Of a stretch of 64,000 bases of DNA, positions 8,067 to 53,298 are shown in pieces. The stretch is from the NCBI GenBank assembly GCA_004431415.1, contig QPMI01000559.1, forward strand, positions 72,961-136,960, read 5' to 3'. The first letter of the stretch is position 1. Every line of letters begins with the position of its first letter. Under the pieces are notes generated by a model. The model saw nothing but the letters and a program-made list of their open reading frames with translations. It made no database searches and was not told the DNA's origin. A program made the translations under genes and the position numbers. This DNA is from Cyanophora paradoxa CCMP329 (taxonomy: Eukaryota > Plantae > Glaucophyta).

Positions 8067-12610
<4,544 letters not shown>

Positions 12611-12689
12611 TACAACAGCATTTTAATTTGAGCTCGGCCCCCTGGGCTCTGCGCATGCCTGAAGGGGTCGGCAGTGTGATGCGCATCGC

Positions 12690-17774: not shown

Positions 17775-18792
17775 GCATTTGGACACGTACTGAAACGCAG
17801 GTCCGGGCTACAAGTGTGGGAATGTACACTGCGGCCGCCGCGGCCGCGGGCCCAGCCCACCGAGCCCACGCTCGGCCAGCCGGGCCCTGCGTGGCCCCCT
17901 AAGGAGAGTAATGCGCCTCCCCACGGACACTCTGGCTAGCTAGAGCTGGACGTCTTTGATTTCGGTTGCGATTGGGGGTTGGGCGATGGAGCTCAGGTTG
18001 GACGTCATTGATTTCGGATACGATTAGGGGTTGTTTTACAAATTAAATAGGGATTGGGTGACCGAGCGAAGGTTGGACGTCTTTGATTGCATGCGATTAC
18101 GATTAGGCCGGGTTGGGCGACGGAGCTAATTTTATAAGCTTTTAAGGTTAACGTTAACGTTGGATGTCTTTGATTTCGATAACGATAAGGGGTTGGGCGA
18201 CACAGCGCTAGCTATGGTACCGGTTGTACGTTGGAAGCCATCATAGTATATATATATATATTATTGCCTCACGGCTTTATGCCGTCAAGAGCCCGCACTC
18301 CGAGTCGCGTTACTCGCATGCGCAGTGCTTGGCCTTAGTCTACGCAGCGCTCGCATTGAGTGCGGCGATTGGACCCCCACTACTTTTCATGTACCCCTCT
18401 CGGGCTCACACCCCAGGTGACACACTTGTACCCTGCGACTGTGCTTGCTCCTAGAATACCAGTTCCGCTCGCTCTCGCTGCCAGCCTGCCGAAGCTGCAC
18501 AGCACGCATGGTCACGCCTAGCAGCACCGTAAACTAGGCTCTTCTGAATATATATAGCATATAGCGCCAGCTAGCGCTAGCTAGAGTGTCCGCGGGAAGG
18601 CGAATTAATCGAAATACTCTCCTTAGGGGGCCGGGGGGGGGGGGGGGGGGGGGCATGACCAGCTTGCTGGCCATGGTGGGCTGGGCGCCAGCCGGGCCAG
18701 CGGCTGCGGCGGCCGGAGTGTACATTCCCACACTTGCAATATTAATTGTTGCATGTCGCCCAGACTTGCGGTTTGAATTCGTGTCCAAATGC
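17775..18792. mobile_element. Inverted pair of left ends (17775-17940 plus; 18578-18792 minus) enclosing ~50-bp subterminal repeats
   Basis: GCA-TTTGGACAC termini at both outer edges; repeated GGACGTCTTTGATT...CGATT units at ~17945-18200. Confidence 0.7.
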
Positions 18793-18925
18793 TGAGACTC
18801 AGCTGTTACTAAGACCTCGTAAAAAAAAGAAAGAATCCTATAGCTCACCGACTAGTACTGGACCCATCTTGGAACTCATCAACGAAATGATGTCCAACTC
18901 ATTCACCGACTGTCCAAACCAATGA

Positions 18926-19080
18926 TGCTCTTTCTAAGCTACGGGCGCGCCGGACCTCCTACCTACAGCGCTTTAACTGTACCCGTGCTGTTCGGGGTGA
19001 GAGCGTAACCCGCAGGGACTGGTGCCCTGATGGAGAAAAGGGGATGGGAGCCGAGCCTAGCTACGAGCTGAGCAGGCGCT
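18926..19080 (-). mobile_element. Fanzor right end copy
   Basis: Reverse complement of ~53145-53298 with intact GAAAGAGCA terminus. Confidence 0.85.
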
Positions 19081-19148
19081 AAAATTTTACTCTCCAAAGT
19101 TTCACTCATCTTCGATAGAGAAGGAACTCAACGATAGATAGAGAGGGA

Positions 19149-19558
19149 TTACATGTGGGTCTTCAATGTATCTACATCAGGAATCTCTGGGCCCGGAGCC
19201 TGAACATATGAAAGACGTGTGCGTCTACGGTGACTCTGCTGTGGCGACCAAGGGGGCTTTGCGGCAGGGCTGGAGGGACTAGACGGCCGATCGTTTGCTG
19301 GAACTTTAATCGATATTGGTTCTCGAGGACCAGCAGGTTTTGCAACGGCAATGTCTACCTGTAGCCTTGAGAGAGCATCCTCGTGATTCAGCATCCTTTG
19401 AGCCAATAGTTGTTCGCTGCTGTGTATAGAGAGATGAAGATGAGCCAAATCATCAGAGAGCTGTTGAAGATGTCTGTGAATGTGAGCTGTTAGAGTTGCA
19501 GTTGCTGCTGCTGCTGCTGCTGTTGTTGTCCTCTGCTGCTGTTGTTGTTGTTTCCTCT

Positions 19559-19590
<32 letters not shown>

Positions 19591-19595
19591 TGCTG

Positions 19596-19646
<51 letters not shown>

Positions 19647-19745
19647 CCGCCACCGCTGCTGCTGTTGCTGTCCAGTTAGGCTTGTGGAGTCTTGACAGCA
19701 GCTGTGCTTGTGCTTGCTGGAGTTTTGATCGTTAACTGCACCCAC
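19149..19745 (-). other. Poly-Q ORF / (CAG,CAA)n microsatellite in a repeat-derived segment
   Basis: Trinucleotide tract at ~19500-19670; 19168-19283 recurs inverted at ~42945-43059. Confidence 0.45.
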
Positions 19746-20492
19746 GCCTTCGATTCGCCTTCTCTGGGCCTCGTCTTTGGCCTTCCTTTCGTTCTTTATT
19801 TTGATAAGCTCGGGCTGGGCAGCTGCTTGAGGATCAGCAGCTTGCCAATCCGCATCATCGTCAGAAAATGGGAGCTGTTCAGAAAAGAAATCAACTGTAG
19901 CGAACGGGCGCTATGAGTGCAATGAAAGAGCCATGGCAAATCGAAAGTGTAGCACCGTCCTCGCTGTCCCAGTGAAGATTTCCCAGTCGCAGGTGCGATG
20001 CTGTTAGATTCTTCGCTAGCTTCGTGGGGATGTTGGGCGGAGGGAGTGGGAATTCGAAGGCGTCGTCCAGGGGCGGCTTTGAGCGGAGGTTCGAGCTGAC
20101 GTTCGGAGCCGCTGGCGGTGCCGCCACACGTGCTGTTGGTCCTGCTGCCGCCGCTGGCTGTGCCGCCACGCGTGCTGTTGGTCCTGCTACCATAAGCGCA
20201 GCCACCGCCTGGGCCCCTGACACCACCGCTGGCGCCCTCGGCGCTTGCGCAATCGCTGGCGCTGCTGCCGCCCCCGCGGCTGAGCCCCCCGATGGAGTCG
20301 CGCTTGCTGAGGCATGGACTGCAGCGACTGGCGGTACAGGCACAGTAGATCCGCGGCCACCCTTGGAGCTAGCTCCTTGGCCGCGGAAGAACGCAAGCAT
20401 TCTTATTCTACGCTGCCGGCGGCGGGGCGGGGGCGGCTGCTGGCGTTCGCGATGGGGAGGCTGCGGGCGCCGCCGGGCTGAACAGCCGCCGG

Positions 20493-20539
20493 CAGCACGT
20501 AGGTAGGAGGTCCGGCGCGCCCGTAGCTTAGAAAGAGCA
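20493..20539 (+). mobile_element. Minimal Fanzor right end copy
   Basis: GTAGGTAGGAGGTCCGGCGCGCCCGTAGCTTAGAAAGAGCA, identical to the element terminus. Confidence 0.8.
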
Positions 20540-20737
20540 GCAATCTAGACCCCCGAACTGCTGAAGGTCAAGCAAGCTTTTGCTCGGCTCTTAAGCGAGC
20601 CGTTGCTCGGCTGCCCGCGTATAAAGCCGAGAGCTCGAGCCGGGCTCGCGAAGCCGCTCCCTCAAAGTACGTATACCCCCAAAAGTCATCCGTCAGAAGC
20701 TGCAGCGCGCGCGTCTTCGCCTTCGTTTCTTGTCACG

Positions 20738-21780
20738 ATGTCGGGAGGGAAGGAAAGGATCGACGTCATCGCCGTCCTATCGAAGGACGCGGAGACGATC
20801 CGGTGCGCAGGCGCTCATCAAAGACGTTCAAGAGTTTAGCTGTCGTCCAACCCCTAATCGCACTCGCAATCTTTGCACGCTGCGATTTCAGGGAGCTCTT
20901 CAAGCTCCACGCGCGGGCGCTCCTCGAGAACGACAAGGAGGAGCAGGTCAGTCGTATGCGCAGACGCACGCGTACGTGCTAATTTTCGCCTCTGTTGCAG
21001 GATCGCCTCTCCCGCGAGATCCAAAGGCTCGTCGCGCTTTTTCCGGGCTTTTGCAGCGCCATTCAAGAGTCTAGCTGTCGTCCAACCCCTAATCGTAATC
21101 GCAATCTTTCCACGCTGCGTTTTCAGGGAGCCCTTACATAAGCCTTACATATGCGAGCTCAAGAAGTCCCGGGCTGTTGCAGCGCCAGCTGATCGATGCG
21201 CCCGTAGGCACGCGATCGCACACAGCTACGCCGAGAAGAAATCCCTGTTTCCTAATATCGGGTCACTCCTCCCAGAGGAAGCGGATGTTGAGGCGATAAA
21301 GGAACGCTGCGTACACGATCTGAACCGATGCGAAAGGCACCTCGTCAAATTGAACAGCATTTCGCCGTTGGAGGGTCAAACTTACGAACAGGTTCGATTC
21401 TCTGCCACCTGGCGCAGACTTCGGAAGCACATCTGACGCCATGTGGGCCCAAGGAAATGGAGCGGCTTCGAGAATGCCTTGAATCCTATTTTCTCGATGA
21501 GGAGGACATCCTTTTCCCCAAGATGAGAAAACAGGTGCGACGCCTTTTTTTTTGATTCCTTTGCTCTCTCTTCTCGAAATCTGGGATAAGGCTGACGCTG
21601 GTTAGGCTGACGAGGCATTCCTCCATTCTCTCGCTGCCTCAATTTTGAATGAGAAGCACCGTGCCCCACATGTCCTCGAGGTGACCACTACTCTGATTAT
21701 GCCAATCGAGATTCTGACTTGTGTTTCGATTCTGTTCTGGTGAATGACGTCGACAGGTCAGTCCGATGAAGCTGGGCTAA
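20738..21780 (+). CDS. Hemerythrin/HHE-like domain protein, multi-exon
   Basis: Two HHE-like half motifs, AHSYAEKKSLFP and YFLDEEDILFPKM; internal intron/exon duplication at ~20828-20905 and ~21062-21140. Confidence 0.6.
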
Positions 21781-21906
21781 CGATCTAACGAGTCCAGACT
21801 CGATCTGGACTTGACGCGAGTGTGTTTGGATGTTTCAAATCAAGATAATGTGTACTGCCACAACAACAGCGATCTGGTTCTCGAGTCTCTGTGCTCTGTG
21901 GCGCGG

Positions 21907-22040
21907 GGGGTTGAGGGGGTTGGGGGGTTTGGGGGTTGGGGGTTGGGGGTTGGGGGGTTGGGGGGTTGGGGGTTGGGGGGTTGGGGGGTTGGGGGGTTGG
22001 GGGGCGGGGGGGGGGGGGTGGGGGGGGGGTGGGGGGGGGT
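21907..22040 (+). repeat. G-rich (GGGGTT-like) tract, G-quadruplex-prone
   Basis: Directly visible runs of G4-6 separated by TT. Confidence 0.85.
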
Positions 22041-22156
22041 GGCTGTCTTGGAATTTATCAACGTCAAACAGGGTTCGCCTGTGGATCTTCAATATTGGAT
22101 ACTCGTGGCAATCGTGTCAACAGCCCTCGGGCCTATAATTTTCGTATCTCTGAGCC

Positions 22157-22520
22157 TGGAGCCTGAGCAGAGTGCCCCTAGGCCTCTATTAATATTCGTC
22201 CCCTTCTTGCCCTCTGGCGCAGGCCGACTCCATGTCTGGTCGCCTCCTCGCTGCAGGCGTACCACGTTGCGAAGAGGACCGAGGCCTGCGCCCACAGCGC
22301 GCAGAAGTGCGTCAACAGGCATCGCCCCCCCCCCCCCCCCCCCCCCTCCCCCCCCCCCATTGCCGGGGCAGCTAGCAAGAGTGTCCGCGGGGAGGCGCAT
22401 TACTCTCCTTGGCCAGTTCTTTGTTCAAGAATAGAGCAATAGCGGCTCACCCAAACAGCACGGGTACAGCTAAAGCGCTGAGGTAGGAGGTCCGGCCGCG
22501 CCCGTAGCTTAGAAAGAGCA
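22157..22520 (+). mobile_element. Composite ~365-bp unit ending in a Fanzor right end; second copy inverted at 32301-32665
   Basis: Colinear similarity between the two copies, stopping exactly at GAAAGAGCA. Confidence 0.8.
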
Positions 22521-22567
22521 ATAGTATGTTACACGTAGCAGCTTTTCCCCGTGGCCGGCCAAGGGTT

Positions 22568-24600
22568 CTAATTCTTCTCCGGTACAAAAACTCGAATTAT
22601 ATCGGTCAGCGTAAATACACCGACAGGCTAACGCAAACAAAATGAGTCAAACCTCCACAGAGGTAGCACAAGCACAAGCAAAGATTTGCGGACCTTCATC
22701 TGTTCATCGCAGACCCAGACACCTGTTCATCTCATCAGGCCGGGCAGCGTTCCGTTTTCTGCGGCCTATCCCCCTTTGAATCTAGCTGCGGTCCCCCAAT
22801 GCGGCAGCTTCTTGGCCGGTTCTCAACGGGCGGGGTCAATGTTTCTAGCGCGCCATCTCCCCCCCTTTCCTCCCCCCCCCTCCCCCTCCCCTCCCCCTTC
22901 CCCCTCTCTCCCCTGCAGCCACGCGCGCCCATAGCCTAGAGAGCGCACCAAACCAGTGGTTCTCGTAGATTTGTCGAACAACGTCGAGGATGCTCTCCGT
23001 TTTGCGTACACAACGAGGCGTCTGCAACGGCGTGACTTCCTGGTCATGGTGAGTTCGCAGTGCGGCGCACATGACCACCGTGCAGTTGGTGCAGAAAGAA
23101 TCCTATGGGAAAATTGAGGAAGCTGAGCTTCTCCTTGTCCAGCCTGATGGAGAAATCAGATTGCCACAAGAAGCGATAAAGAGGGCCGTGATCTTGCCCT
23201 CTCAGATCACGAACTCCAAGCGTTGCTGCGACTTTCCCCTCCTCATCAACCACAGCAATCGCGCTGAGATGAAACTTGTGCATCTTGGAGGCGTTTAGGT
23301 GGATTCGAACATAGACTCCAATGCATGCCGTACCAAGACAAACCCGTCCAGAGCCCGCTCCCGATGTCCAATCGAGACTACCCCCTGGTGCATCTAATGT
23401 GAAGGTTAGCAGCAACCGCTTGAGCGGGAGAGGAGAGTTACAATTCTCTCCACCGGGATATCGCGTATCTCAGGGATGCAGTGCGCGTTCTCATATCTGC
23501 CACTAAAATAAGGCGAACCGATTGTGTGGGTAAGGTATCACCCACAAGAAGCGGGTGAGGTCGATCTGGCCTAGGATGTGCAGCTCGTTGTCCTTCTCAG
23601 ATTCTACGAGGGCCTTGTGTGTTCCACTTTGGAAGACTTGGGCAAGCCTTTTTTGCGCTTAGCAGTGTACGTATATACGGTTAAGAACGACGAACACATC
23701 AAGCGGCGTGTTCGACGGGAACTTCGGCAATTCAACTCTTTTTTCCTTTCCCAAAAAATCGATCACCTGCTCAATCGTTTGAAAAAATCGTTTTAAATTA
23801 ATTTCTCGATCCTGCGGCAGGGCTCGGCTGGGCTTCGGACCTCCTTGATGGGCCGCGTGAGAAAGTTCTCAACTTCGTCGAGAATTCTCTTCCTTGCTTC
23901 AATGGACACCGGCCCGTCCACTACCTCTGCGTCCCCGAGAACATCGAGCACTGCGTGAAGCATGACGAATTTTTGAAGCTCTTCTGCTGAAAGACAGCCA
24001 ATGTAGCTCTTGCTCTTCGGCCCACCCGTAGTTACTGGAATGCTGCAGATGGCGAGCAGTATGATTATTTGGACCGCATTTGGACGCATTTGGCCTTCAC
24101 TTTAAATTTCCCCCAGCCGGCGTTGATGACAGCCGTGCACCTGCTCACATGGGCCTCCTTGAGGAGCGCGAAGCCCCGGCCCACAGTCTCAGTCGAGCTG
24201 ATTTCGATAAGATGAGTCGGTGCTTTGCCGCCAGAATCGCTGCGCGCGAAGAGATTTCCTGCATGTTTGTAAGCAGAAAGCGCCAGATCGGGCCACTGGG
24301 CCAGTTGAAACAGAAAGCGCACTGAGCGATCGAGTGATTGATAGTTTCTTTCTATCCCCCTTCGCGCTCGCCCCCGAGCTCTCCTTCTCGGCCTTTCGTA
24401 AACTCAGCCGTCTGTTCCGCGCGCGCGTGGTGGTGGCATAGACCTGGCGCTCGCGCATTTCTTTTTGCAAGCCCAGCAAAAACTGAACCGTCTTCCCCGC
24501 AAGAAGCTCCTTGACCCGTACCGCCGACGACGTGTCCTGCGGGAGAGAGCGGGCCGGCAGCGGAGCGGGCGCACGGTTAGCTTGATCTGATTTCGACTTC
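22568..24600 (-). CDS. CBS-domain protein (SNF4/AMPK-gamma-like), multi-exon
   Basis: Exons LIEISSTETVGRGFALLKEAHVS, LSAIAVVDEEGKVAATLGVRDLRG, CVRKTESILDVVRQIYENH, RVWVCDEQMK, PVGVFTLTDIIRVFVPEKN*; start uncertain. Confidence 0.8.
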
Positions 24601-24812
24601 AATGTTAGATAAAGCTGCTGCAGCTGATTGCACGCACCAGGTCTAGAGGCTGAGGGCGCACGAAGTCGCGCTGCATCGAGAGCCGGCCGGGCGGAGGGGT
24701 CCCGGAGTGCGAGGCCGAACCCTTCATCGCCCTGACACGACAGATCTCAGTCGCGCGCGGCTCGAGAATCAGATTTCCACGTTCAATCCTTTCGAGGCGG
24801 GTATACAATAAC

Positions 24813-25179
24813 GCATTTGGACACTGTGACACGTACTAAAACGCAGGTCCGGGCTACAAGTGTGGGAATGTACACTGCGGCCGCCGCGGCCGCGGGCCCA
24901 GCCCACCAGCGAGCTGGCCGGCCGGGCCCTGCGTGGCCCCCTAAGGAGAGTAATGCGCCTCCCCACGGACACCGTGCTACGCTATGGCTAGCTATGGCTA
25001 CGTGTGCCCGCATGCGCGGCCGCGCCCGGGGGGCCACGCAAGGCCCGGCTGGCCAGCTAACTGCACCTGGGACGCCAGCGCTAGCGCGGCGCCACGCGGG
25101 TCCGGATCCGCGCCCCACTTGCCTGGCCAAATCCCACACTTGCAGCCCGGACTTGCGGTTTGAATTCGTGTCCAAATGC
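24813..25179. mobile_element. MITE-like unit formed by two inverted left ends
   Basis: GCATTTGGACAC at 24813 (plus) and at 25179 (minus); the two ends belong to different left-end subfamilies. Confidence 0.75.
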
Positions 25180-25200
25180 TTCTTCCGTAATATAAGCCCA

Positions 25201-26404: not shown

Positions 26405-26811
26405 CGAACTTATAGATATCGATGGCGGATCCAGATCAGCCGCTCAGGAGGGGCCCCCGGGGGAACTTGGGGAAGGGGGGGAGGGGTAGGGAGAGGGGGG
26501 GCGGAAACGAACGGGAGGGGGGGCCTGGGGGGCTGGGGGGGGCGGAAGTGGGCGCGGGGGCTTGCCATTGGCAGCCAACTGCAGGTCAGATCAGAAGTCA
26601 CCCTTCCTCGTCAGACAATTGCAAGTTTTTCCTGGGGCCTTCGAGCTCTTCGCCTTTCGTCAAAACCGTACGGCTGGCTTGGGCGTGTCTTAAGCTTCCT
26701 CGTCGATCAGAACGTCGACCCAGGCTTCTGCACTACCGGACCGGTGCCTCTAAATCTGTAAAGATCGAGATCGAGCTCAAGGCCGGGCCCGCCGCGCATA
26801 CGTAGGAGACC

Positions 26812-27817: not shown

Positions 27818-28067
27818 CACAAGCCCCTCCCGCGCTGCACCGTCGAATTGTGGTCACGATTATGATTGGGAATACGATTACGATTGCGAACACGATTACG
27901 CTTGCGAATATGATTACGATTAGATATAGTGCGAGCCTTAGGCGGCGGCGTTGGCAAGCTTTAAGTGTTTTTGCAGGGAGCCTGTTTCAGGACGCCTAGC
28001 TCGGACGCCTAACGCCTGTTTGAGATCAGGCGATCGCGAGGTAATTACAATGCTGGGTAAGCGTGCT

Positions 28068-28312
28068 GCAATTGGACACGTACTAAAACGCAGGTCCGGC
28101 CTCCGGGCTACAAGTGTGGGAATGTACACGGTGGCCGCCGCGGCCGCGGGCCCAGCCCACCAGCGAGCTGGCCGGCCGGGCCCCGCGTGGCCCCCTAAGG
28201 AGAGTAATGCGCCTCCCCGCGGACACTCTGGCTAGCTATGGCTACGTATATACGTGTGCCCGCATGCGCGGCGTGGTGCTGCATCGCGTCTTGGGGCGGC
28301 AGGGGCCGCAAT
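28068..28312 (+). mobile_element. Fanzor-associated left end copy
   Basis: GCA-ATTGGACACGTACTAAAACGCAGGTCCGG...; matches 17775, 24813 and 52000. Confidence 0.8.
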
Positions 28313-28499: not shown

Positions 28500-29680
28500 A
28501 ACCTCGTGGAGTTCAAACATCACCCGACGGAAAAGTCGACAGAGCTGCCTGTGCCCATGAGCCCAGTCCGCAGCTTGGCACTGGCGGCAACAGTAGCATG
28601 CCTGCAGCCACTTAAGCATCGGAGCGATCATCGGACTCCAATCAACGCACCGCTCGGCATGAGCCGCACACTTGAAACTCCCTGCGTCGGGTTTCTGCCT
28701 GCCCACACACCCGATTGAAGCACGATCGCAGCTGATGCCGCCTGCTACAAGGGAGTTGTGGCGAAAGCTAATGACCAGGCGACAATTCCGCATACCTGGG
28801 TTGCCGTTCGCGGTGAGCCCGTTCCTGTACATGCTGCGCAGGCAACTCCGGAGGGAGGTCTGCATCTTCTCGGTCGGGCGCGTCCAGCCGCCGACCGTGA
28901 GGGTCGGGCCGCGCTTCATCCGCCAGGATTGCCAGGCCAGCGCGACCGTCTTCTGGGGGATTGCGACGGCCCGCCTCATCTTCTCTGCCTTCTCGCATGC
29001 CCGACTCCCGCGTGCCCAAGGCCGACCCAGGAAGCGGCGGGGGGATCCCAAGGTCCCGCTCTGCGGCCGACCGTGCAGTCTGCAGAATCTCCATTAACTG
29101 CCCAAACTCAGCGTTCAGAGCTGCGTGTGCATCGAAGGCACGGGCGCGTCACCATGTGGTGCGGCTTCAAGCGGTGGTGCCGCCTCTCCCGCTCCGCGTG
29201 CGCATCTCGAAACCCCTCGAGACGATCGATGCGGTCCAGGTGGAGGTTGAGAAGTCGCACGAACGACTCAAGGATGACGGAGAGCATGCGGCTCCTGTTG
29301 CCCGCAGGAACGTCTTCCGGCGGGGGCTCGGGCGGCTCGCCGCGTTGCTGCCGCAGCGCAGCTATGTCTGCCCTGAGGGTCTCCACGGTTGACTTGAGAA
29401 GACTGTCTATGTCGAGGCGGCGTGCGGCGCCCTGCTCCCCCTCTGCTGCATGCGCCCTGCTGGAGCTAGCGGCAGCGGTGTTCCCCGGCGCAAGCGGCGG
29501 GTGGGGCTCGTCCACTGCGGCGGCGGCTGTTCCTTGCGCTTGCGCGGGGGCCACGTCGTCCTCACTGCTCCCCGCGGCCTCACCGCCCTTTCTTGGTGCC
29601 AAACGCTCGGACTCCGCCCCGCTCTCACCGCGGCTCTCCATCACTGGAGAGCTTGGAGCGCTGCGGCGACGACGGCTGTA
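28500..29680 (-). CDS. Hypothetical multi-exon protein, function unknown
   Basis: ORFs 29108-29713 and 28768-29094 are joinable by a short GT-AG intron; no recognisable domain. Confidence 0.3.
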
Positions 29681-29689
29681 CCCCAACAG

Positions 29690-32300: not shown

Positions 32301-32665
32301 TGCTCTTTCTAAGCTACGGGCGCGGCCGGACCTCCTACCTCAGCGCTTTAACTGTACCCGTGCTGTTTGGGTGAGCCGCTATTGCTCTATTCTTGAACAA
32401 AGAACTGGCCAAGGAGAGTAATGCGCCTCCCCGCGGACACTCTTGCTAGCTGCCCCGGCGAGGGGGGGGGGGGGGGGGGGGGGGGCGATGCCTGTTGACG
32501 CACTTCTGCGCGCTGTGGGCGCACGCCTCGGTCCTCTTCGCAACGTGGTACGCCTGCAGCGAGGCGGCCAGACATGTACATGGAGTCAGCCTGCGCCATG
32601 CCAGAGGGCAAGCTTAAGGGGGGGACGAATAGAGACCTAGGCCTAGGGGCACTCTGCTCAGGCTC
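32301..32665 (-). mobile_element. Second copy of the composite right-end unit
   Basis: Reverse complement of 22157-22520. Confidence 0.8.
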
Positions 32666-33001
32666 GCCATGCATGCATGTGACATCGATGCAGGTCCTCT
32701 CCCCGGCCCCTTCTATTGTTGCATTTCTCCACTTCATTTTTTGAAGGGGCCGGGGCCCATCATGATGATGCATGTGCAACTGCAAGTTGGAAATACCGTA
32801 GTACAGCCTTCTTATACCGTAGTACAGGGCCTACAATATATAGCGCTAGCATAGTAGCTAGGCTACAAGACTAGCTGGCCGTGTGCAAGATCGGTGGGCT
32901 GCGCGGGGCGCATGCCTAATTTAAAGCTGGGCTGACGCCGTGACGGTGGCAGCAGTACTAGTACTTGTGCACATACTATGCTTGTACATGCCATGATGTA
33001 G

Positions 33002-36000: not shown

Positions 36001-36104
36001 GATTTGATAGTTGAAACGGAAGCCGGTTCGAGCTGGCTCGAGGCAGGAGGGGGCTGGCTCGAGCTGGCTCGAGCCGGGAGCTTTGTGCTCGAGCCGAAGC
36101 TCTA
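33002..36104. mobile_element. CTCGAG-rich MITE-like element with 18-bp TIRs, split by a LINE insertion
   Basis: TAGAGCTTCGGCTCGAGC at 33002-33019 and its exact inverse at 36087-36104; GGCTCGAGCC subterminal repeats on both arms. Confidence 0.6.
33407..36021 (-). mobile_element. 5'-truncated L1/Tx1-like LINE (post-RT region, zf-RVT, long C-terminal extension, (CTT)n tail)
   Basis: FTVHSVYKYL and CPVCHRRCNALHVFVLCPVVQQFW (CCHC knuckle); frameshift and stop present; ORF continues 34901-33687; tail at ~33406-33418. Confidence 0.85.
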
Positions 36105-36996
36105 GCACTGTGTAGCCCGGACTTCAGGGCCTTGGGGGTAGCTATAAGTATACCGGTACCGGTTCATCTCACAGTACTAGTGTCACAGCCACTGAGTGTC
36201 CAAATGCTGAACGATGCGCGAATTCAAAGCTTACATGGGAGGTATTGCTCTTCATGATCACATTGTATACGTATACGTATACGTATACGTAGCTACGTTT
36301 ACACACGTGCACTACGTACTGGAAACCGGCATGCACCGGGCCCTTACTAAGTTATATACTATGATAATTAGGGGGAGAATAGAGCAGGACACGTGCCGCG
36401 CAGTGCCAAGTGCAAGCCCTCCCGAGGGCGGACCGGAGGCCCTGAGGTCTCAATTTTGCAAAAGGGGGAGGCCTCAAAAACGGGAATTTGCCCGGCCAAG
36501 AAACATTAGTAAACACAAACTGCAGAACGCGAAATGCACTGCACCCGAAGTACGGTCTCATGATCAGCATGCAAGGGCCGGGGGCATTACTTTCAAGCTC
36601 CGCACCGGCCCCATTCATTGAATCCTGCTCGAGCTCGAATTATTGCAGAAGAATATTGAATCCTGATCACGAGTTCCGAAGTTCCGCTTTCAACTTGGCA
36701 ACCGGTCACGGGTCAAGTTCAACAATTTGAAGTTTTCACTTCCGCAGTGCTTCCGCTTTCGAATTTACTAGCGTTCGCGGCTGGCCCGGGGCCCGCTCCT
36801 TTCGTGCATGCGTGATGATGGCTTATGATTGTATCTTTTCGCTTTTTCCTACATGAACTCCTAATTACATCAACATCGAGGTGGTACATTGGGGGCGCTG
36901 CTGGACCCCGTCATGGAAGGAAACCCCTCCGAAAAATTTGAAAAAGGTCCAGGCTGTTTTGCCCATGGAAAGGCTGCCCGGCGGCTGAGAAGCCGC

Positions 36997-39933: not shown

Positions 39934-40130
39934 TGCTCTTTCTAAGCTACGGGCGCGGCCGGACCTCCTACTTCAGCGCTTTAACTGTACCCGTGCTGTT
40001 TGGGTGAGAGCGTAACCCGCAGGCCCTGAGGGACTGGTGCCCTAGGCCTGATCATCGGATGGAAAAAAGGGAATCGGAGCCTAGCTAGCTACGAGCTGAG
40101 CAGGCGCTTCGCGTCCACGCCCGTGCCGTA
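39934..40130 (-). mobile_element. Fanzor right end copy with small insertions
   Basis: Intact terminus TGCTCTTTCTAAGCTACGGGCGCG on the plus strand. Confidence 0.85.
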
Positions 40131-40639
40131 TAGACACAGGCGCTTCGCGTATAGACACAGGCGCTTCGCGTATAGACACAACACGCACCGCGCGGCGCCG
40201 CCGTCGCATATGCATTTATGAACGGAACAGGGACACTGCAGTTGCACTGCCCCTGTACATGTTGGAGGGGAAGGACCTCTATCGGTTGATCATGAGCAGG
40301 AAAGGTCAGGTTAGCCAAGATAGAGATAGCTATAGTGCTGACTCTGTAGATCTATAGCTAGAGCCTGCGCACGCAGCCGCTGATAATGATCATGAGTTGC
40401 GCGAACGCCTGCAGTTGGGACGGTCGGCCGGGCTCGCGATCGACTCGGCGAGCTCGTGGGACCGGAAGAGGACTTGCAGGTCAATCAGTTAGGTTGATTA
40501 GTTCTGGGTCTTCGACTCGCCCCCGCCCCCTGCTCGTCACGGCGTCTCGCGATCGGGATGTGCAAGGTGGCCATGTGGCCTAATTCAACAAAGACAGCAT
40601 CTGCAGACTGCAGCTAATGCTCGGTAGGCGTAGACGTGC

Positions 40640-41235
40640 CTCCTGCCGCGCCTCCGCCCCGCCCGGCGAGCCCCGCCGCCGCCCGCCGCGCCTCCGCCCC
40701 GCCCGGCGAGCCCCGCCGCCGCCCGCCGCGTCTCCGCCCCGCCCGACGAGCCGCGCCGCCGCCCGCCGCGGCTCCGCCCCGCCCGGCGCGCCGCTCCGCC
40801 GCCCGCTGCGCCTCCGCCCCGCCCGGTGCGCCGCGCCGCCGCCCGCCGCGCCTCCGGCCGCCCGGCGAGCCCCGCCGCCGCCCGCCGCGCCTCCACGCCG
40901 CGCCGCCGCCCGCTGCGCCCCGCCCGGCGGCGAGCCGCGCCGCCACCCGCCCGTCGAGCTGCACCGCCGCCCGCCGCGCCTCCGCCCGCCCGACGAGCCG
41001 CTCCGCCGCCAGCCGCGCCTCCGCCCCGCCGGCGCGCCGCGCCGCCGCCCGCCGCGCCTCCGCCCCGCCCGGCGAGCCGCGCCGCCGCCCGCTGCGCCCC
41101 GCCCGGCGGCGAGCCGCGCCGCCACCCGCCCGTCGAGCCGCGCCGCCGCCCGCCGCGCCTCCGCCCCGCCCGGCGAGCCGCGCCGCCACCCGCCGCGCCT
41201 CCGCCCCGCCCGGCGAGCCGCTCCGCCGCCCGCCG
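40640..41235. repeat. Extremely GC-rich minisatellite
   Basis: Recurrent CCGCCGCGCCTCCGCCCCGCCCGGCGAGCC units; long overlapping stop-free ORFs on both strands. Confidence 0.9.
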
Positions 41236-42907: not shown

Positions 42908-43419
42908 TACAGTATCACAGTATCACAGTATGCCGGCCAGGGCTCTAGTCCCTCCAGCCCTGCCGCAAAGCCCCCTTGGTCGCCACAGCAGAGTCACCGT
43001 AGACGCACACGTCTTTCATATGTTCAGGCTCCGGGCCCAGAGATTCCTGATGTAGATACGAAAATTCCTGATGGCAGCCAAAGTGGTAATCGTAATTCCC
43101 TCACGGCCTTGCTGGCCATGGATCGTAATCGCAATTCACAGTATGCCAGGGATCGTAATTCACAGTATGCCAGTGGCAATATTAATCGTAATTGCCCCAC
43201 CCCCCCCCCCCCCCACCCCCGCGCCCCCCCTCTGGCTTGAATTGGTTCGCAACGCGCGCAAGTGCACGGAGCTCGAGGCATCCACGCATTTAATTTTGCA
43301 CTTTGTGTTAACAAAGGTTTCTTTTGGCCGGGCAACTTCTTTGGGTGTTTACGATTACGATCAAGCCTTACGAGTTACGATTACGATCAGCCAGACGAGA
43401 AAGCCGAAGCCTGCACCAG

Positions 43420-43449
43420 GGACCTGCGTTTTAGTACGTGTCCAAATGC
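43420..43449 (-). mobile_element. Left end terminus copy
   Basis: Reverse complement reads GCATTTGGACACGTACTAAAACGCAGGTCC. Confidence 0.75.
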
Positions 43450-43864
43450 GAAGAATTAGCTGCCTAATATCACGAAGGAATCATTTTTGAAAGCGCTCCC
43501 CTCCCCCCCCAGGCCCGCCCCCCCCTGGCTTGAATTGGGTTCAACGGTTGCAACGCAAGTGCATGAAGGCATCCATGGGCGTTCGTCCATGCCCCCCTGA
43601 CTCCAGCTTTAAATTAGGCATGCGCCCCGCCCAGCCCACCGATCTTGCACACGGCCAGCTAGTCTTGTAGCCTAGCTAGCGCTATATATTGTAGGCCCTG
43701 TACTACGGTATAAGTAATTGTCTATCGTAATCGTAATTTACCTCCGGCCCGGCTCACCGCCTACCCGCCTACTAGGGCTAGCCCCCTGATAGTAATCGTA
43801 ATTTTCCAGTTGACCAGGCCAGGGCTCCCCTCGCCTATAGCCCATCGTAATCGTAATGGGCGCG

Positions 43865-44104
43865 GCAATCGCAATCGTAATCGTACTGATCGCACAGACC
43901 TCTTGCAGGGGCATCCTGATCCGCTACGGCACGGGCGTGGACGCGAAGCGCCTGCTCAGCTCGTAGCTAGGCTCGGCTCCCATCCCCTTTTCCATCAGGG
44001 CACCAGTCCCTGCGGGTTACGCTCTCACCCCGAACAGCACGGGTATAGTTAAAGCGTTGACGGTCTAGTGAGTGGTCCGGCGCGCCCGTAGCTTAGAAAG
44101 AGCA
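43865..44104 (+). mobile_element. Fanzor right end copy including the last exon (variant subfamily)
   Basis: Matches ~53069-53298; encodes GILIRYGTGVDAKRLLSS*. Confidence 0.88.
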
Positions 44105-44210
44105 TCCACGTGTGCTTCAATCTCTCCATATTATTCGGACGCGCAACAAATCTTAGCGAATCCGCTTGTTCGGACGCGCTGTTTCCTTCCCACTTGGAAA
44201 GCGGCCAATC

Positions 44211-46087: not shown

Positions 46088-47199
46088 AGTGGTGGTCGGG
46101 AACGGTATACGGTGTCCGAGCGTACGGACTAAGACCGCCGCACCAACCGTGCGCTGAGCCACCTTGAGCTCGGGCCTTGGGCACTTGAAGTCGGAAGTCT
46201 CGGGGCAGGGTACAGAGTACTTCAGTTGTCCTTTACCGGCCCGATTTCGATGCTGACGTCGACCAAGACCGATTACGATCGATTCGATCATGATTACAAT
46301 TTTATTAGGACGTCCTAGCTTGATGTCATTGCATTTGATGCATATGATCACGTGCACTGCAGCTGCGCATGCAGCTGCCAGGCTGCAGCGCTAGCTGTGA
46401 GTCAACCTGTGAGTCAGTGACTCTAGACCCCGGTCGGCAGAGCTCGCGATCGCGATCGAGGCTCGACCCAGGCCCCCGGCGCCCCCTAGCTATAGCTTGC
46501 AATTGGCTTTCACCCCTCTCTCGCTCGCCTGGCTGCCCAGCTGCAGCTCTGCGGCCCGTACGCGTCCCCCCCGGCTCAGCCCTCTGCCCAACAGCCCCCC
46601 GTCAGCACTCTCGCGGTCTAGCGTCGACGTCCGCCCCGAAATCGTCCAAAATCGTTTCTATACCGGCATCAACTGGAGCCCACTCGCCGAGGAGTACCTG
46701 CGCATGCGGCGCAACCGTGCAGCAGCAACCGTGCAGCAGTTCTGTGTTGATGGCTGGCCCGAAGGCGCCCTCGGGAGGCCGCGGTGGTGGACGCGGCGGC
46801 TCCGGAGGGGGCCGCGGCGCCTCTGGAGGCAGTCGCGGCAGCTCTAGCGGTGGCTACGGTGGCGGACGTGGCGGTGGTGGTGGCGGCGGCCGTGGCGGTG
46901 CCCCGACGCAGCCCCAGGGCGTCCCCTTCCAGGCCACGACCTGCGCCTCACGCCCGCCGGGGACGATGGGCATCTCCTACGCGGCCGCCGGGCCTGCGCA
47001 TGCCCCCCGCCGCCCTCCGCTCCCCTTGACGACGAGCCCATGCCCGACGCCCCGACCGCGCCGTCGCCCCGTCATACATTAAGAAATACTGCACAATTGA
47101 CACGTGCACTGTGACAGGGCGCTCGCATGCGCAAGCCTCCGCGCGCGCGAAACAAACGCACCAGTGGCAAGGTTGGGAAAGAAAATGTGGTGCACTTAC

Positions 47200-50100
47200 C
47201 ACAGCTCGCGAAAAAAAGTCGGTCCCCACAACTCGGTTTGTATGACAGGGGGGGGAGCAAGTCGACTTGGAAAATCCCTACGCCGGTCAATTAAATCTTT
47301 TCATATATATGGCATATATATGCATTCTTATAGAGCTTATTTCTTTCTATCAGTAGTTTTAACGAGATCGAGGAGAGATTCCGGTCGGCGGTCGCTGGCA
47401 GATCTAGAGAGAAGTTCAACAAACAGCACGCCTCTTGACAGTGTTGACACCAGCGCCCACATCAGCATTGCGTAGGCCCGAGGATCGAAGACAGCCAGGC
47501 AGTATAGTTTGGATGCGTCCGGGCGTACTGTGGCCTAGCGCGCCTTCGTTCTGCCGCAGCAGCGGCCGACGCACGACGCCCGCGCGCAGCGAGCACGACG
47601 CACTCATGATCCGCTACGGCTCGTGGTGCGCTCGTTGCCCCCGTTGCCCGGGCCCGTTGCCCCTGTCGCTGACAAACACGCAGGCTGACACTCCCGTAGT
47701 AGCCACTGCATGTACCTGTAGTAGCTACTGTACCTGTAGTAGCCACCATGCGGCTCTGCGGTCCGCGCGTCCGAGCCGGGGCCGACCGTCGGCCGCGGAC
47801 GCGTGGCGGCGTGTCTCGGTGCTCGAGCAGGGCGCGACAGACGCGGGCGACGACGGGGCGACGCGGGCGACGCGGGGCGGCGGGGCGGGCCCCGGCGGGC
47901 GGCGGAGGCCAGGCCGACGCGCGGCGGGTCTCGGTGCGCGAGCAGGGGCCGCGGGCGGCGCCGAGGGGCTGCCGACGACGGGGCGCAGGCCTGCGGCTTC
48001 GGGGGCGGCGGGGCGGGCCCTGGCGGGCGGCGTAGGCCAGGCCGACGCGCGGCGGCGGGTCTCGGTGCGCGAGCAGGGGCCGCGGGCGGCGCCGAGGGGC
48101 TGCCGACGACGGGGCGCAGGCCTGCGGCTTCGGGGGCGGCGGGGCGGGCCCCGGCGGGCGGCGTAGGCCAGGCCGACGCGCGGCGGCGGGTCTCGGTGCG
48201 CGAGCAGGGGCCGCGGGCGGCGCCGGGGCGCTGCGGACGACGGGGCGTAGGCCTGCGGCTTCGGGGGCGGCGGGGCGGGCCCTGGCGGGCGGCGTAGGCC
48301 AGGCCGACGCGCGGCGGCGGGTCTCGGTGCGCGAGCAGGGGCCGCGGGCGGCGCCGAGGGGCTGCCGACGACGGGGCGCAGGCCTGCGGCTTCGGGGGCG
48401 GCGGGGCGGGCCCTGGCGGGCGGCGTAGGCCAGGCCGACGCGCGGCGGCGGGTCTCGGTGCGCGAGCAGGGGCCGCGGGCGGCGCCGGGGCGCATTCTTC
48501 TCAGGGCCTCTCCGTCCCGCCTGCTCTCCTGCTCTCCGTCCCTCTCCGAAACCCGCCGGCGCCCCGCCTGCGCCGTCTGGGTCGGCGAGCGCTTTGTTAA
48601 GCATGTACGAAGCTGTAAATGCATCTAGATGATGTATATCTCGCGTCCCAGGCGCTAGATGCGACCGGGCGGGCGAGAATCGTCCTGGGGCCAGATGGGG
48701 CCGCAGATTGCAGCGGATCTTGAATGCAGGTCCAGGCTTTAATCGGCGGTCTTCGGTACCACCACCACCGTCTTCAGCACCCTCGAAAACCCCCGGGGGC
48801 GTGAAATCGCCACTACTGAGTGAGTCGATGCTTCCGAAGTTCAATAAGGCATCATGAGCAGGTCAGGGTGGCATCTTGAAACTTGAAAACTGAAAAGTTC
48901 CAGAGAGAGTCCTACGCCGTGACGAGTGAAGTTCAAAACATCGGTCCGGCCCAAAAACACTTCGGATCACCCTGGATCTTGGTGTGGTGACATTTATACA
49001 TGTGATAATGATTCTGGCTTGAAGAGCGGCCAGCTGAGGCCAGCCAGTCGCCCAGGAACTCACTAGCTCACTGACTGTGAGCAGGCGATCTCCGCTGAGG
49101 ATGCACCGACGGGGGCCGCGATGCATCAGCACACGCTCTATCAAGGCTCGCATCGATTTGCGTTAGCGGTGGCCAAGCGAACCCCCGCGGCCGGGAGCGA
49201 AATTAGATCGCAAAGGCCCCCCCCCCTCATGATCATGATCAAGCCTTCTGGAGGAGAAGGCGATTCCCGGTTCCCGCTGCAGATGCACGCGCCGGAGCCG
49301 CGCTCCACCCGCACATGCTCTTTCGAGATGTGCATCGATCTGCGTTAACGGTGGTCCAGCGACTCGGCGAACCCTCGCGGTCTAGAGCGAAATTAGATCG
49401 CGCAGGTGCCCCCACCCCAAGCCTTCTGAAGGAGCAGGCGATCTTCGCTGTGGATGCACCCCCGGGGACCGCGCTTCAACTGCACATGCTCTTTTGAGGT
49501 GTGCATCGATCTGCGTTAGCGGCGGCCCGGCGGCCCTCGCAGTAAGCAGCGAAATCAAATCTCCCAGGTGCCACCCGGCCCACCCACTGGACTCAGTGGA
49601 GCAGGTGCCTCTGGCCATGGCGGCGGGGGTGCGTGCCGCCGCCCGTACGCGAGCTCTGCGCGTGCTCTAGATGTGCCTCATGGCCCTAGACGTCTCAACC
49701 CGCATCGCCCCGCCGTTGCAGCCATGCCATCTGGAACCGCGGCCGCCTGCGTCTGCACACGAGGCCCGGGGCCGGGGCCGGGGCCTGCGGCGGCGAGGAC
49801 GCGGCGGAGGAGGCGGAAGAGGGCGGCGCGGCGGAGGGGGCGGGGCGCGACGGGCCGGCCCAGGGGGCCCGGGGCCGGGGCGGCGGAGCGGGGCCCGCTG
49901 GAGCCGAGGAGGACGGCCGGCGGGGCCGCCGGGAGCGCCGCCAGGTCCCCCGCCTGGCCCTGCGCCGCCGCGGGCTCGAGGGGGGGTATACCCCGAGCAC
50001 GGGCGGGTACGACAAACAGCGGTTCGCGCCCGAAGGATCCGACACAGCCAGCCGGCACCGTCGCCGTGAGGCTGGCATGCCGCTTAAGCTTGATTGCACA

Positions 50101-50925
50101 CGAGCGCGCGTCTGCCTGGGCGCGGTGGGACACGAAGCGGGTCTGAGCGAAAGAAGCATGCCTCTGCGGCGTGCGTCCCGGTGCCTGCGGCAGGCGCCGG
50201 CGGATCCGATCAGGCCTAGGGCGCCGGCGCCGGCGCGGAGTGTGCGAACGCGGAGCTCGTGGGCGCGGCAGCGTGGCGCTTCGCCACGCACCTATTCGTG
50301 ATGTATAGCTTGGCGCCATCCTGCGCCATCTTGGCGAACCGGCTCTCGTCGGGCCGCGGGCTGCGGCTAGCGCTGTACATGTAGTCAGCGCGCGCGGGTC
50401 GGGGGCGAGCCCAGATGCGAGAAAGATCACACCTGGCGCACTGTAAGCTTGCTCTGAGACGAACTGGAGCTACTGGAGGTCGCCCGCGCTCGAGCCCGGA
50501 ACCTTCTCAGATGGGGGGCCCTGCACAAACGCGACGGCCATTTCGCGCAGCTGACGGAGCGAGGGCTGCCATCAAACACAGAGCTAGAGTGCTTGACTAT
50601 CTAAACTTTGTCTGAAGCACTTTGAAAATCGTCGGGCTAGTTTTCGCGCACGCTTTCCTTGAAGGCGATCGAGTTTGACCAGACTCTTGGTTTTCGTCGC
50701 GGCGGTGCCCGAAGGCGGCCGTTCCTGCTCCATATGCGACCTGGAGGCTAGCTGTGACGCTCTCTGCTGCGTGCGGAAGCTGCGGTGCGTGCTGGTCGCG
50801 CGCTTCGCCGAGTCGCGTACGTCTACCCCGGGTGTTTTAACTTTTGTAGGGGAGAATTATTCGAGTCCCAAGTCGAGTCCCAGCCAAGTCGAATTGCGGG
50901 GACCGACTTTTTTTCGCGAGCTGTG
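47200..50925. mobile_element. Non-autonomous TIR DNA transposon, CACTA/EnSpm (CMC)-like, CACAG...CTGTG, 3-bp TSD
   Basis: 28-bp perfect TIR CACAGCTCGCGAAAAAAAGTCGGTCCCC; TAC at 47197-47199 and 50926-50928; empty-site copy at 55273-55363. Confidence 0.9.
47800..48490. repeat. GC-rich ~123-bp tandem minisatellite inside the TIR element
   Basis: Repeating GGGTCTCGGTGCGCGAGCAGGGGCCGCGGGCGGCGCC units. Confidence 0.9.
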
Positions 50926-51229
50926 TACATTGGGGGTGTGACCCAGCGGAAGCCTGAAGCGGGAATGAATTGAGCAAGGACGTTTTTCTGCGAAGTTTTT
51001 GTTCCTGTTTTAATTCTTATATATCTTTTGTTTTCGTGTTTTTTTAAATGCGGAACTTTTTGCGAACTTTTTGTTTCGTGTTTTTTTAAATGCGGCCCGG
51101 GCCGGCCGCGCGCGCGCGCGCGGCCGGGCCGCCGGGCCGGGCGGCGGGCCCACGGCCGGCGCCCGCCGGGCCGCGCCGCGCGCGGCGGGGCATGCATGCG
51201 CATGCCCGCATACGTCCTACCGACGCTAC

Positions 51230-51482
51230 CGTGTAAGACTTAAATACCGCGTCACAAATTAGCGCGTTTCAAAAATTTGGGCCCCGATTTGCGCTTAATT
51301 TACCGCGCTACCAAATATTACCGCGTTCCATGCATCGTCTTCCGAAGTTCGAAAATGTATTATTTGTTAGCAAAGGGGGTAATACATATACTGCGCTACC
51401 AAATTACTGCGTTCTAAAACTTTTGAGCGCGGTAATTTGTCAGCGCGGTAGTTAAGTCAGCGCGGTATATAAGTCTTACACG
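51230..51482. mobile_element. ~253-bp MITE
   Basis: TIR CGTGTAAGACTTA(A/T)ATACCGCG (22 bp, one mismatch); internal TACCGCG repeats; AT-rich core. Confidence 0.8.
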
Positions 51483-51999
51483 CCGGTGCGTGCGCATGCA
51501 TATGCCATGATGTGCGCATGCATGCGCATGAGCAGCTGCGCATGCACTGCGCATGCAGATATCGATCTATCTGTACGTATGGCGATATCGATCGCGATCA
51601 GCTGCAGGCAGCCTGGCAGCACTGCATGCACATGTGGCACACTGTGACATGTACGTACATACGTATATGCACGCGTGCAATTAATAAATATTGCAAGTGC
51701 ACGTATGCATACACGCGTGTTAGGGACCTAGGCCTAGGTGCGCATACTACCCAGAAAGTTAATTGCACCACTCGGTTGGGATTTGTGTGTTGTAGCATGG
51801 CGGGGCGAGGGGGGCAGCGCGCTACGTATACGCGACAGCTGGCATGGCATGTGAGAGGCAGCATGTTGGAACATGGGGGCAAGGAGCATCAGCACCTCCG
51901 GTCCAGCCCTTTTCAACCTTTACATTTCCGTGGGAAGGATCGGACCTGCCACAACGACCTCTCGCCGCCGTCGGGGCGGATCTGCCTCCTACGTCATTC

Positions 52000-53298
52000 G
52001 CATTTGGACACGTACTGAAACGCAGGTCCGGGCTACAAGTGTGGGAATGAGCCGTAACGCACATGAGCCGTCTATGTAGTAATCACAGATCAAAGCTAAG
52101 ACGTCCTAATTATGATCGTAATCGCAGATCAAGGACGCCCTAATCGTAATCGCAGATCAAAGCTAAGACGTCGACGTCCTTATTATGATCGTAATTGCAG
52201 ATCAAAGCTAAGACGTCGACGTCTTCGCAACACCAGCATGTCGCTGGCCAACAGAATTCGCAACACCAGCTGGAATGCCATGCACAAGTTGGCCAAGGTA
52301 TGCGTAAGCTATCATTGGGTTGTTATCGTGTGGGGGAATCGACCTTGGTAGCTGCTTCTTCGAAACAAGCCGTTGAAAGATGCCGCGCAACAATGTACTC
52401 AACCCCACCAGGAACTTGCACAAGGGCTTCCAGGAGGGCAGCTTCTTCCTTCCGAGAAGTTCCTGTGCCAAGGAAGGAGCAATGCCATGGCAGGGGTTTG
52501 AGCAGAAAAACATTTAAGCAGGTCTTCCAACGTGTTGGCATCATCACTTGCTCGTCTCACAGCTGAAAACGCTGCTGGAACCTGTAAATCTCGAAGTGAG
52601 AAGGCTTCAGGTATTCTTGAAGGGAAAAAAACGGACCGTGGGTGGCGCGTCAGGCTCTCGACTGCCGCCACTACGAGTACGCTGGTCTTGCGTTTCGACC
52701 CCCTCTGCCACACGGTCTTGATGCTTATTTTGCGCAGGTTCCGGCAGCTCCTGCAGCACGCCGTCCGGCGGCACCCCAAGGACGAGGACCCGCCGTGCAC
52801 GCTCCAGCTCGTCTGCGAGGCCTGGACCTCGAAGACGTGCGGGGTGTGCGGCAAGATCAACTACGGGCTCGGCTCGAAGAGGGTCTTCGAGTGCCGCCCC
52901 GGGTGCGGCTTCCGGGCGGACCGCGACGGCAGCGCCGCGCGGTGCGTGTTGTGTCTATACACGCCTATACACAATCGCTGCCCCCCCCCCCGCCTAGTCC
53001 CGACACGGCCTAGCCACGGCGTAATTTTCCGTCTAGGGCCGGCTCGCCCTCCCAGCGCCGCCCGATTCGCAATCGTAATCGTACTGATCGCACAGACCTC
53101 TCGCAGGGGCATCCTGATCCGCTACGGCACGGGCGTGGACGCGAAGCGCCTGCTCAGCTCGTAGCTAGGCTCGGCTCCCATCCCCTTTTTTCCATCAGGG
53201 CACCAGTCCCTGCGGGTTACGCTCTCACCCAAACAGCACGGGTACAGTTAAAGCGCTGTAGGTAGGAGGTCCGGCGCGCCCGTAGCTTAGAAAGAGCA
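52000..53298 (+). mobile_element. Internally deleted Fanzor2/IS607-like element with left end, subterminal repeats, nuclease remnant and right end
   Basis: GCA-TTTGGACACGTACTGAAACGC at 52000; GATCGTAATCGCAGATCAA repeats at ~52080-52215; RuvC/zinc-finger exons; terminus AGAAAGAGCA at 53298. Confidence 0.8.
52211..53164 (+). pseudogene. Fanzor (eukaryotic TnpB homologue) C-terminal remnant with spliceosomal introns
   Basis: RRRRLRNTSMSLANRIRNTSWNAMHKLAK; spliced (introns 52677-52737 and 52942-53106) VARQALDCRHYEFRQLL...VCEAWTSKTCGVCG...LGSKRVFECRPGCGFRADRDGSAARGILIRY...*; RuvC-I and the N-terminus are absent. Confidence 0.9.

Follow-up and report, generated by a model that had tools for sequence, protein, structure and literature searches.

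A GCA junction motif and candidate target-adjacent motif in a Fanzor2-carrying element family of Cyanophora paradoxa

The stretch of DNA analysed in this study (the window, 64,000 nucleotides in length) covers positions 72,961 to 136,960 of contig QPMI01000559.1 from the glaucophyte Cyanophora paradoxa CCMP329 (assembly GCA_004431415.1). It contains a dispersed element family with characteristic left ends (LE) and right ends (RE), whose borders carry the trinucleotide GCA, and the remnant of a gene encoding a Fanzor2-like RNA-guided nuclease. The features of the family are collected in Table 1, where A and B refer to LE subtypes and a prime marks an inverted copy. We consider here GCA as junction motif of the family and its potential role as target-adjacent motif (TAM) of the nuclease.

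The window's only nuclease remnant is contained in the element 52000-53298, for which tblastn returned a single match, with no other TNB open reading frame (ORF) found. Its larger exon, which encodes ...CEAWTSKTCGVCGKINYGLGSKRVFECRPGCGFRADRDGSAAR, matches PF07282 with E = 5.1e-9, above the curated cut-off. The best relative of known structure is the mimivirus Fanzor2 protein ApmFz2 (9b0l; E = 1.6e-6, with only 72 residues compared), whose residues E467 and D501 were described as catalytic (PMC11832414). Both positions align with the segment CEAWTSKTC...ADRD, where the Glu precedes the zinc finger by six residues, and the fragment is, as judged from this similarity, Fanzor2-like. Only 3' exons are found in the window, whereas the N-terminal part with WED, REC and RuvC-I was not found, and the copy is therefore a remnant. 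The only protein relatives detected in a word search were three EukProt models. These models end in ...AAR|GILIRYGTGVDAKRLLSS and have, together with a reading of the sequence, defined the splice borders. A search of the literature returned no paper naming Cyanophora together with Fanzor.

The conserved RE block, into which the gene extends, measures 108-155 nt and terminates in GCA, with variable DNA following. A predicted long stem within the block leaves UAGAAAGAGCA single-stranded just ahead of the variable flank, a layout reminiscent of an omegaRNA, which suggests that the block may constitute a putative scaffold, with the 5' start of the RNA expected near TCCATCAGGG (53191), its 3' end expected to include 14-20 nt of flank and the predicted guide beginning at 53299 (CACATAGAG...). 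Covariation is slight, as it concerns 3 of 25 predicted pairs, all located in short upstream helices and none in the long stem, and a search of Rfam with the RE gave no match. Regarding a mobilising enzyme, the domain search covered the 150 longest stop-to-stop ORFs of the window, and none of these contains a Resolvase, Recombinase, Phage_integrase, DDE or Rep/RepHel helicase domain or another transposase domain.

The original prediction, which was made from the letters alone, had described ten intact REs finishing in GCA and eight dispersed LEs reading GCA-(T/A)TTGGACAC behind unrelated DNA, with both ends not being inverted repeats of each other, all of which is confirmed by our searches. 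A profile search detected ten solid REs (7111+, 7237+, 15866-, 18926-, 20539+, 22520+, 32301-, 39934-, 44104+ and 53298+), including one of 40 nt, besides two 24-nt ghosts, and the RE tip CGTAGCTTAGAAAGAGCA was found 12 times at up to three mismatches compared to 0.09 expected matches. All ten intact REs read ...GAAAGA-GCA, and the DNA following them is unrelated in all but 7111 and 7237, which have 12 nt in common. An eleventh copy on the minus strand (2103-2307), which shows 96% identity along its length, has the last ~15 nt scrambled and lacks a terminal GCA. At the opposite end, GCAWTTGGACAC shows eight exact matches (17775+, 18792-, 24813+, 25179-, 28068+, 36207-, 43449- and 52000+) and 13 matches at up to one mismatch, where 0.43 would be expected in the 64-kb window. 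GCA is present at each of these eight LEs, where the 40 nt of upstream sequence are unrelated and the base directly ahead of GCA varies (c,a,c,a,t,a,c,c). The constant part of the LE is confined to its first 12 nt, beyond which the subtypes A (GTACTGAAACGCAGGTCC) and B (GAATTCAAACCGCAAGTCC) diverge, while sequence common to LEs reaches up to ~200 nt inward. In both ends, the termini including GCA constitute the best-conserved part, and a comparison of the LE with the reverse-complemented RE yields a local score of 11 at a shuffle mean of 13.3. Convincing units containing both ends are restricted to 52000-53298 and the compact, degenerate 2098-2598. In full-length copies, GCA alone is found at both borders, and it is also the only sequence shared by the borders of 52000-53298.

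A different partner of the left ends, which the original prediction had regarded as evidence against itself, was encountered in part, as four of the eight LEs are combined with each other in two inverted LE-LE' pairs and a further LE resides in what is probably captured filler. The arms of the two pairs align with scores of 81 (17775-18792) and 55 (24813-25179) compared to a noise level of ~13, neither pair shows a target duplication and GCA is located on the outer side of every arm. Since GCA inverts together with the arm, it belongs to the left-end sequence and cannot be a direct 3-bp target duplication. This observation bears on the possibility, offered as an alternative in the original prediction, that GCA would be a fixed 3-bp target-site duplication (TSD) generated by a DDE cut-and-paste transposase. 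Such a mechanism would account for the presence of GCA on both sides of 52000-53298, and some Fanzor2 genes do reside in transposons with terminal inverted repeats (TIRs) and TSDs (PMC10711439). Those of Chloropicon and molluscs (Yoon et al. 2023) resemble the present family in the location of Fanzor2 outside of classical IS607 elements and in a boundary motif next to the guide. However, the ends described here are not TIRs, the trinucleotide surrounds the inverted arms as GCA...TGC instead of a direct repeat, the duplications at truncated copies comprise 9-15 nt rather than 3, and a DDE domain is absent from the searched ORFs, which together leave this mechanism scarcely credible.

The state of the target prior to insertion is reflected in three 5'-truncated tails, which sit between direct repeats of 15, 11 and 9 nt (GCAATCCGTTGTGGC, GCAAGTCGAGT and GCATCCACG), each starting with GCA. 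Neither strand of the 64-kb window contains a further copy of any of these sequences, and the upstream repeat copy adjoins the 5' border of the tail in all three cases. Duplications that start after GCA and lack it were not found in the window. In a control with random positions, which is inflated by the window's own repeats, the probability was 0.03 for a repeat of at least 11 nt and 0.08 for one of at least 9 nt. As the duplications all begin with GCA, the unfilled target held one GCA precisely at the present RE junction, irrespective of how the shared GCA is assigned. With its 6 nt of filler, the second tail at 7124..7237 occupies precisely the GCA of the first tail and the 12 nt after it, which correspond to the predicted guide of the latter. 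In tails of at least 210 nt, the last intron is still represented by its 3' part, which points to copying from DNA or unspliced RNA and disfavours retroposition of a spliced mRNA. Around the third case, a diverged duplicate of ~80 nt (43195-43286 and 43497-43577; score 79 compared to a shuffle mean of 18), of which both copies end in GCATCCAYG, brackets a foreign 210-bp piece, which contains an LE terminus and 47 nt of this terminus's own flank. A 6-nt duplication, GCAGCA, at RE 20539 was dropped, as it overlaps possible element homology. A 13-nt copy of the RE tip (GCTTAGAAAGAGC) is found at 7289-7301, 52 nt past RE 7237 on the predicted guide-side flank, and may be a repair scar.

Based on these properties, we propose, with a probability of roughly 0.55, that GCA serves this Fanzor2-carrying family as a genuine junction motif of three bases and is most likely its TAM, that an empty site reads xxx-GCA-yyy and that the truncated tails have originated from break repair. 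Of these components, the motif, the duplications, the inverted LE arms and the Fanzor2-like exon were directly observed, and the TAM role, cleavage in vivo and the repair route are inferred. The published TAMs of Fanzor2 proteins comprise 3 nt (PMC11832414). The element encoding ApmFz2 begins with the GGG that this nuclease uses as TAM (PMC11832414, PMC10530073), and IS607 ends and their target share GG, with the ISXfa1 TnpB requiring GGG (PMC10711439). By the same boundary-motif logic, a 5'-GCA TAM would be a plausible prediction for the present family, and the empty site of 52000-53298 is predicted to read ...ACGTCATTC-GCA-CACATAGAG.... As in IS607, an identical short core is present at both ends and in the target, since GCA is found at 8/8 LEs, 10/10 intact REs and in the target of the three duplications, but its sequence differs from the GG usual in IS607.

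The same features suggest a route by which the tails could have been generated. In a process of abortive RNA-guided homing, the nuclease would introduce a break 6-12 nt past GCA. The far end of this break would use a filled template to copy the flank, the RE and a portion of the element, and the near end, still carrying GCA and the 6-12 nt, would be attached by end joining, sometimes with inclusion of filler. The 6-12 nt kept beyond GCA in the tails are near the range of 9-14 bases after which MmeFz2 cuts the target strand (PMC10432273). It is conceivable, although we consider it a tentative proposal, that cutting by Fanzor2 in vivo has left its footprints in the GCA-anchored duplications, which would comprise the TAM and the 6-12 nt to the cut as left by aborted homing, including self-targeting beside a filled copy. 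The arrangement of 7111 and 7237 fits such self-targeting without proving it. If this was the case, genome sequence alone would suffice to deduce the TAM, the cut position and the self-targeting of an RNA-guided nuclease from a eukaryote, and duplication-flanked tails would preserve empty sites and cut positions as natural fossils. A GCA TAM would furthermore differ from the published Fanzor2 motifs GGG, CCG and TAG.

Several observations weigh against a role of GCA as TAM and a repair origin of the tails. There are only three duplications, and the length of the 9-nt case is by itself weak evidence (control P about 0.08), so that it is the position of the repeats rather than their length that carries the argument. 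The 15-nt duplication takes its upstream GCA from another RE, and the common 5' start of X1 and X2 would be odd for random truncation. Because the RE itself ends in GCA, a bare GCA TAM would make each filled RE junction a legal target, and no flanking base distinguishes empty from filled sites. An intact nuclease was not found in the window. Finally, the repeat of X1 runs 2 nt further into the RE (GAGCA), which would equally fit joining by microhomology. GCA would in this case merely be part of both ends, with no role in target or TAM, and 3-5 nt of microhomology would assist the joining of a free RE to broken DNA. The strong conservation of the termini including GCA and the TCGAG common to the 5' junction of X1 and the start of X2 are in line with such a process. 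Still, none of the three duplications stops short of the complete GCA, the use of microhomology would itself imply GCA in the target and the TAM is tied to the boundary motif in published Fanzor and IS607 cases (PMC10530073, PMC10711439), and we thus regard this explanation as very unlikely.

The one-ended tails also invite a comparison with the Chlamydomonas elements CRe-1/2/3 described by Bao and Jurka in 2013, whose full-length copies follow a fixed motif without duplication, while truncated copies contain 7-19-nt duplications beside the motif and, in some cases, long duplications as well as captured sequence (PMC3627910). A rolling-circle/HUH element of this Helitron2 type would insert at a fixed motif without duplication, and its one-ended events would produce 5'-truncated copies with variable duplications. 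The description (PMC3627910) closely matches the intact 3' and ragged 5' ends, the internal deletions, the duplications that are tied to a fixed motif and confined to truncated copies, the long duplicate of ~80 nt and the filler observed here. The family also resembles CRe-1/2/3 in the 5' end being common to non-Fanzor elements, and an element of this kind would begin with the T after GCA. In contrast, the motif is GCA in a glaucophyte host compared to TTTT in CRe-1/2/3, the duplications include the motif rather than follow it (a parse that is ambiguous since the RE also ends in GCA), the searched ORFs do not contain a RepHel domain, no asymmetric terminal inverted repeat was detected that would connect a position 20-30 nt away from the 3' end with the 5' terminus, and the nuclease fragment is closest to Fanzor2, whereas CRe elements carry Fanzor1. 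A Helitron2 mechanism thus appears unlikely. Abortive homing, if true, would offer a testable mechanism for the one-ended Chlamydomonas Fanzor copies with variable duplications reported in 2013, which are still unexplained.

Membership in the IS607 group, which the original prediction had assumed, is not supported by our data. In the strict form of this mechanism, a serine recombinase provided in trans would excise a circle, whose RE-GCA-LE junction recombines with a target GCA. Common to IS607 and IS607EU elements (ISXfa1, ISvMimi/ApmFz2) and the family in the window are the missing TIRs, an identical short motif at both borders and in the target, which is here also part of the LE arm, and an RNA-guided nuclease gene that runs into the conserved RE. 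The TAMs published for these elements comprise 3 nt equivalent to the boundary motif, and the fragment is nearest to ApmFz2, with Fanzor2 being the clade linked to IS607 (PMC3627910, PMC10711439). Compatible with this mechanism is also the 10-mer ATCGTAATCG, which is found close to both ends of 52000-53298 in direct subterminal orientation. It occurs 25 times in the whole window compared to 0.08 expected, without exception within or next to these elements, in the vicinity of LEs as well as REs and often within 18-24-nt tandem repeats (such as 2312-2441, 16094-16172, 43352-43883, 52115-52152 and 53072), and may be a candidate binding repeat for a mobilising protein. Conversely, the searched ORFs do not contain a serine recombinase, although it could act in trans, the known core is the dinucleotide GG instead of GCA, the inverted LE-LE' units could only invert but not be excised, and the majority of LEs have no RE as partner. 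Long inverted pairs of LE arms, introns in the gene and 9-15-nt duplications in many copies further distinguish the family from IS607. Conservative site-specific recombination makes no target duplications, and the three tails flanked by 9-15 nt are therefore not its products. Taken together, we judge a strict IS607 mechanism to be improbable. Cryptons, which carry a short identical sequence at both termini with one copy corresponding to the target (PMC13565253), share the short direct repeat at both termini, but a match to a tyrosine recombinase (Phage_integrase) is absent from the same ORFs, and the duplication-flanked truncated copies would not be explained by this mechanism. The family resembles IS607 in its shared core and the CRe elements in its one-ended copies, and its inverted LE arms distinguish it from both. 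It also illustrates that boundary-motif logic derived from IS607 can be right on the motif even where a transposase of the assumed kind is not found.

Table 1. Elements, ends, exons and duplications in the window (positions are those of the window).
Feature	Position	Strand	Remarks
Compact LE-B-like ... RE element	2098..2598	-	0.5 kb; 24-nt repeats; RE tip scrambled
RE tail	7003..7111	+	108 nt
Second RE tail	7124..7237	+	6 nt filler; on flank of first tail between GCAATCCGTTGTGGC copies
15-nt duplication GCAATCCGTTGTGGC	7109-7123 and 7235-7249	+	flanks tail 7124..7237
Tail X1	15866..16827	-	~0.96 kb between repeats, repeat starts 970 nt apart; keeps 3' part of last intron
11-nt duplication GCAAGTCGAGT	16828-16838 and 15858-15868	-	flanks X1
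LE-A ... LE-B' inverted pair	17775..18792	.	1018 bp, ~200-bp arms; GCA...TGC flanks, no target duplication
X2, long relative of X1	18926..24771	-	shares RE, middle block and 5' start TCGAGYCGCGCGCGACTGAGAT; no duplication found
RE tail	20499..20539	+	40 nt
RE copy, chimeric subfamily	22159..22520	+	inverted internal LE piece joined to last 75 nt of RE
Second LE-A ... LE-B' inverted pair	24813..25179	.	367 bp; GCA...TGC flanks
Solo LE-A (GCAATTGGACAC)	28068..28272	+	no RE downstream
RE copy, same chimeric subfamily as 22159..22520	32301..32930	-	collinear with 44104 further upstream
LE terminus	36196..36207	-	diverged beyond 12 nt; uncertain whether paired with RE 32301
RE copy	39934..40205	-	DRD-exon remnant DGGAARCVLC at 40176-40205
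164-bp piece with LE terminus (43420-43449)	43286..43449	-	flanked by two ~80-nt duplicates; probably captured filler
9-nt duplication GCATCCACG	43278-43286 (exact) and 44102-44110	+	one-mismatch copy 43569-43577
RE tail	43578..44104	+	followed by GCATCCACG (44102-44110), which also ends both upstream duplicates
Best LE-RE element	52000..53298	+	1.3 kb, internally deleted; 47 nt LE, three ATCGTAATCG-bearing repeats, 3' Fanzor exons, RE
Fanzor exon	52738..52941	+	rearranged catalytic Glu, CxxC...CxxC zinc ribbon, RuvC-III DRD motif
Last Fanzor exon (GILIRYGTGVDAKRLLSS)	53107..53164	+	stop TAG 53162-53164; inside conserved RE
3' untranslated region and putative omegaRNA scaffold	53165..53298	+	134 nt, ends ...GAAAGAGCA; conserved in 10 copies

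The assignment of left to right ends by adjacency was abandoned, as four adjacent and correctly oriented LE-RE neighbours were observed where 2.5 would be expected (P = 0.2 by label shuffling). A combination of LE 36207 with RE 32301 is doubtful, and the ORF located between them (34736-36163), which has neither a Pfam match nor a homologue, is uninformative with respect to a transposase. Doubtful is also the pairing of LE 43449 with RE 39934, as this LE is inside the piece bracketed by the ~80-nt duplicate. A virtual empty site reconstructed from a host gene at 52000/53298 was rejected, with no domain found on either flank. Scans of metagenome and viral contigs with the exact RE pattern detected no copies outside the window. 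With respect to the truncated copies, X1 is a deletion derivative of X2 with the identical 5' start TCGAGYCGCGCGCGACTGAGAT, and the 5' ends of both are followed on the plus strand by an inverted LE-LE' pair at distances of 937 and 42 nt. In the chimeric RE subfamily (22360-22440 and 32380-32470), the reverse complement of CCCCTAAGGAGAGTAATGCGCC...GGACACTCT is fused ~45 nt ahead of the terminal 75 nt of the RE.

Additional LE-like starts that were absent from the original list are found in an array at 8057-12611, at 2598 on the minus strand (GCATTTGGGCAT) and at 24076 on the plus strand, and the region 24066-24095 contains ~10 nt of the LE start in three head-to-tail copies (ATTTGGACC GCATTTGGAC GCATTTGGCC). 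The array consists of tandem units of ~710 bp with an interruption at 9566-10621, whose LE-like unit head reads GCATGTGGACAC in four cases and GGATGTGGACAC in the first unit, and the units contain a second GCATTTAAATTT start besides (GT)n and extended stretches of poly-G and poly-C. Since the array begins with CTGGAAAG and ends in ...CTGG, its unit junction is a product of slippage rather than the RE-GCA-LE junction of a circle, and the array has grown by this process out of a single LE-bearing insertion.

Beyond the element family, host-type genes are scattered among the repeats, including minus-strand ORFs at 28500-29093 and 3951-4955. One host-type ORF displays a MYND-like zinc-finger motif, which was read from the translation and is unconfirmed by domain search, another is a mitochondrial carrier and four ORFs of the window match phosphoglycerate kinase (positions not located). 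Very GC-rich tandem repeats are found at 40638-41235, with a unit of 20/40 nt, and at 47874-48487, with 4.7 copies of a 131-nt unit at 96% identity. Downstream of 52000-53298, a 311-bp direct repeat (98%; 53348-53658 and 54192-54501), of which a 48-nt piece is also present 9 nt after RE 53298, surrounds a segment of 533 bp that starts with a weak 24-nt RE-like tip (53676-53699, minus strand). This arrangement was rejected as a GCA-anchored duplication, as the repeat begins 20 nt past GCA. The tract of TTAGGG at 56560-64000 contains ~1,246 units with errors of the long-read type and abuts unique sequence abruptly, which identifies the window as the end of a eukaryotic chromosome. With its 7.4 kb, this telomere tract is unusually long for a microbial eukaryote.

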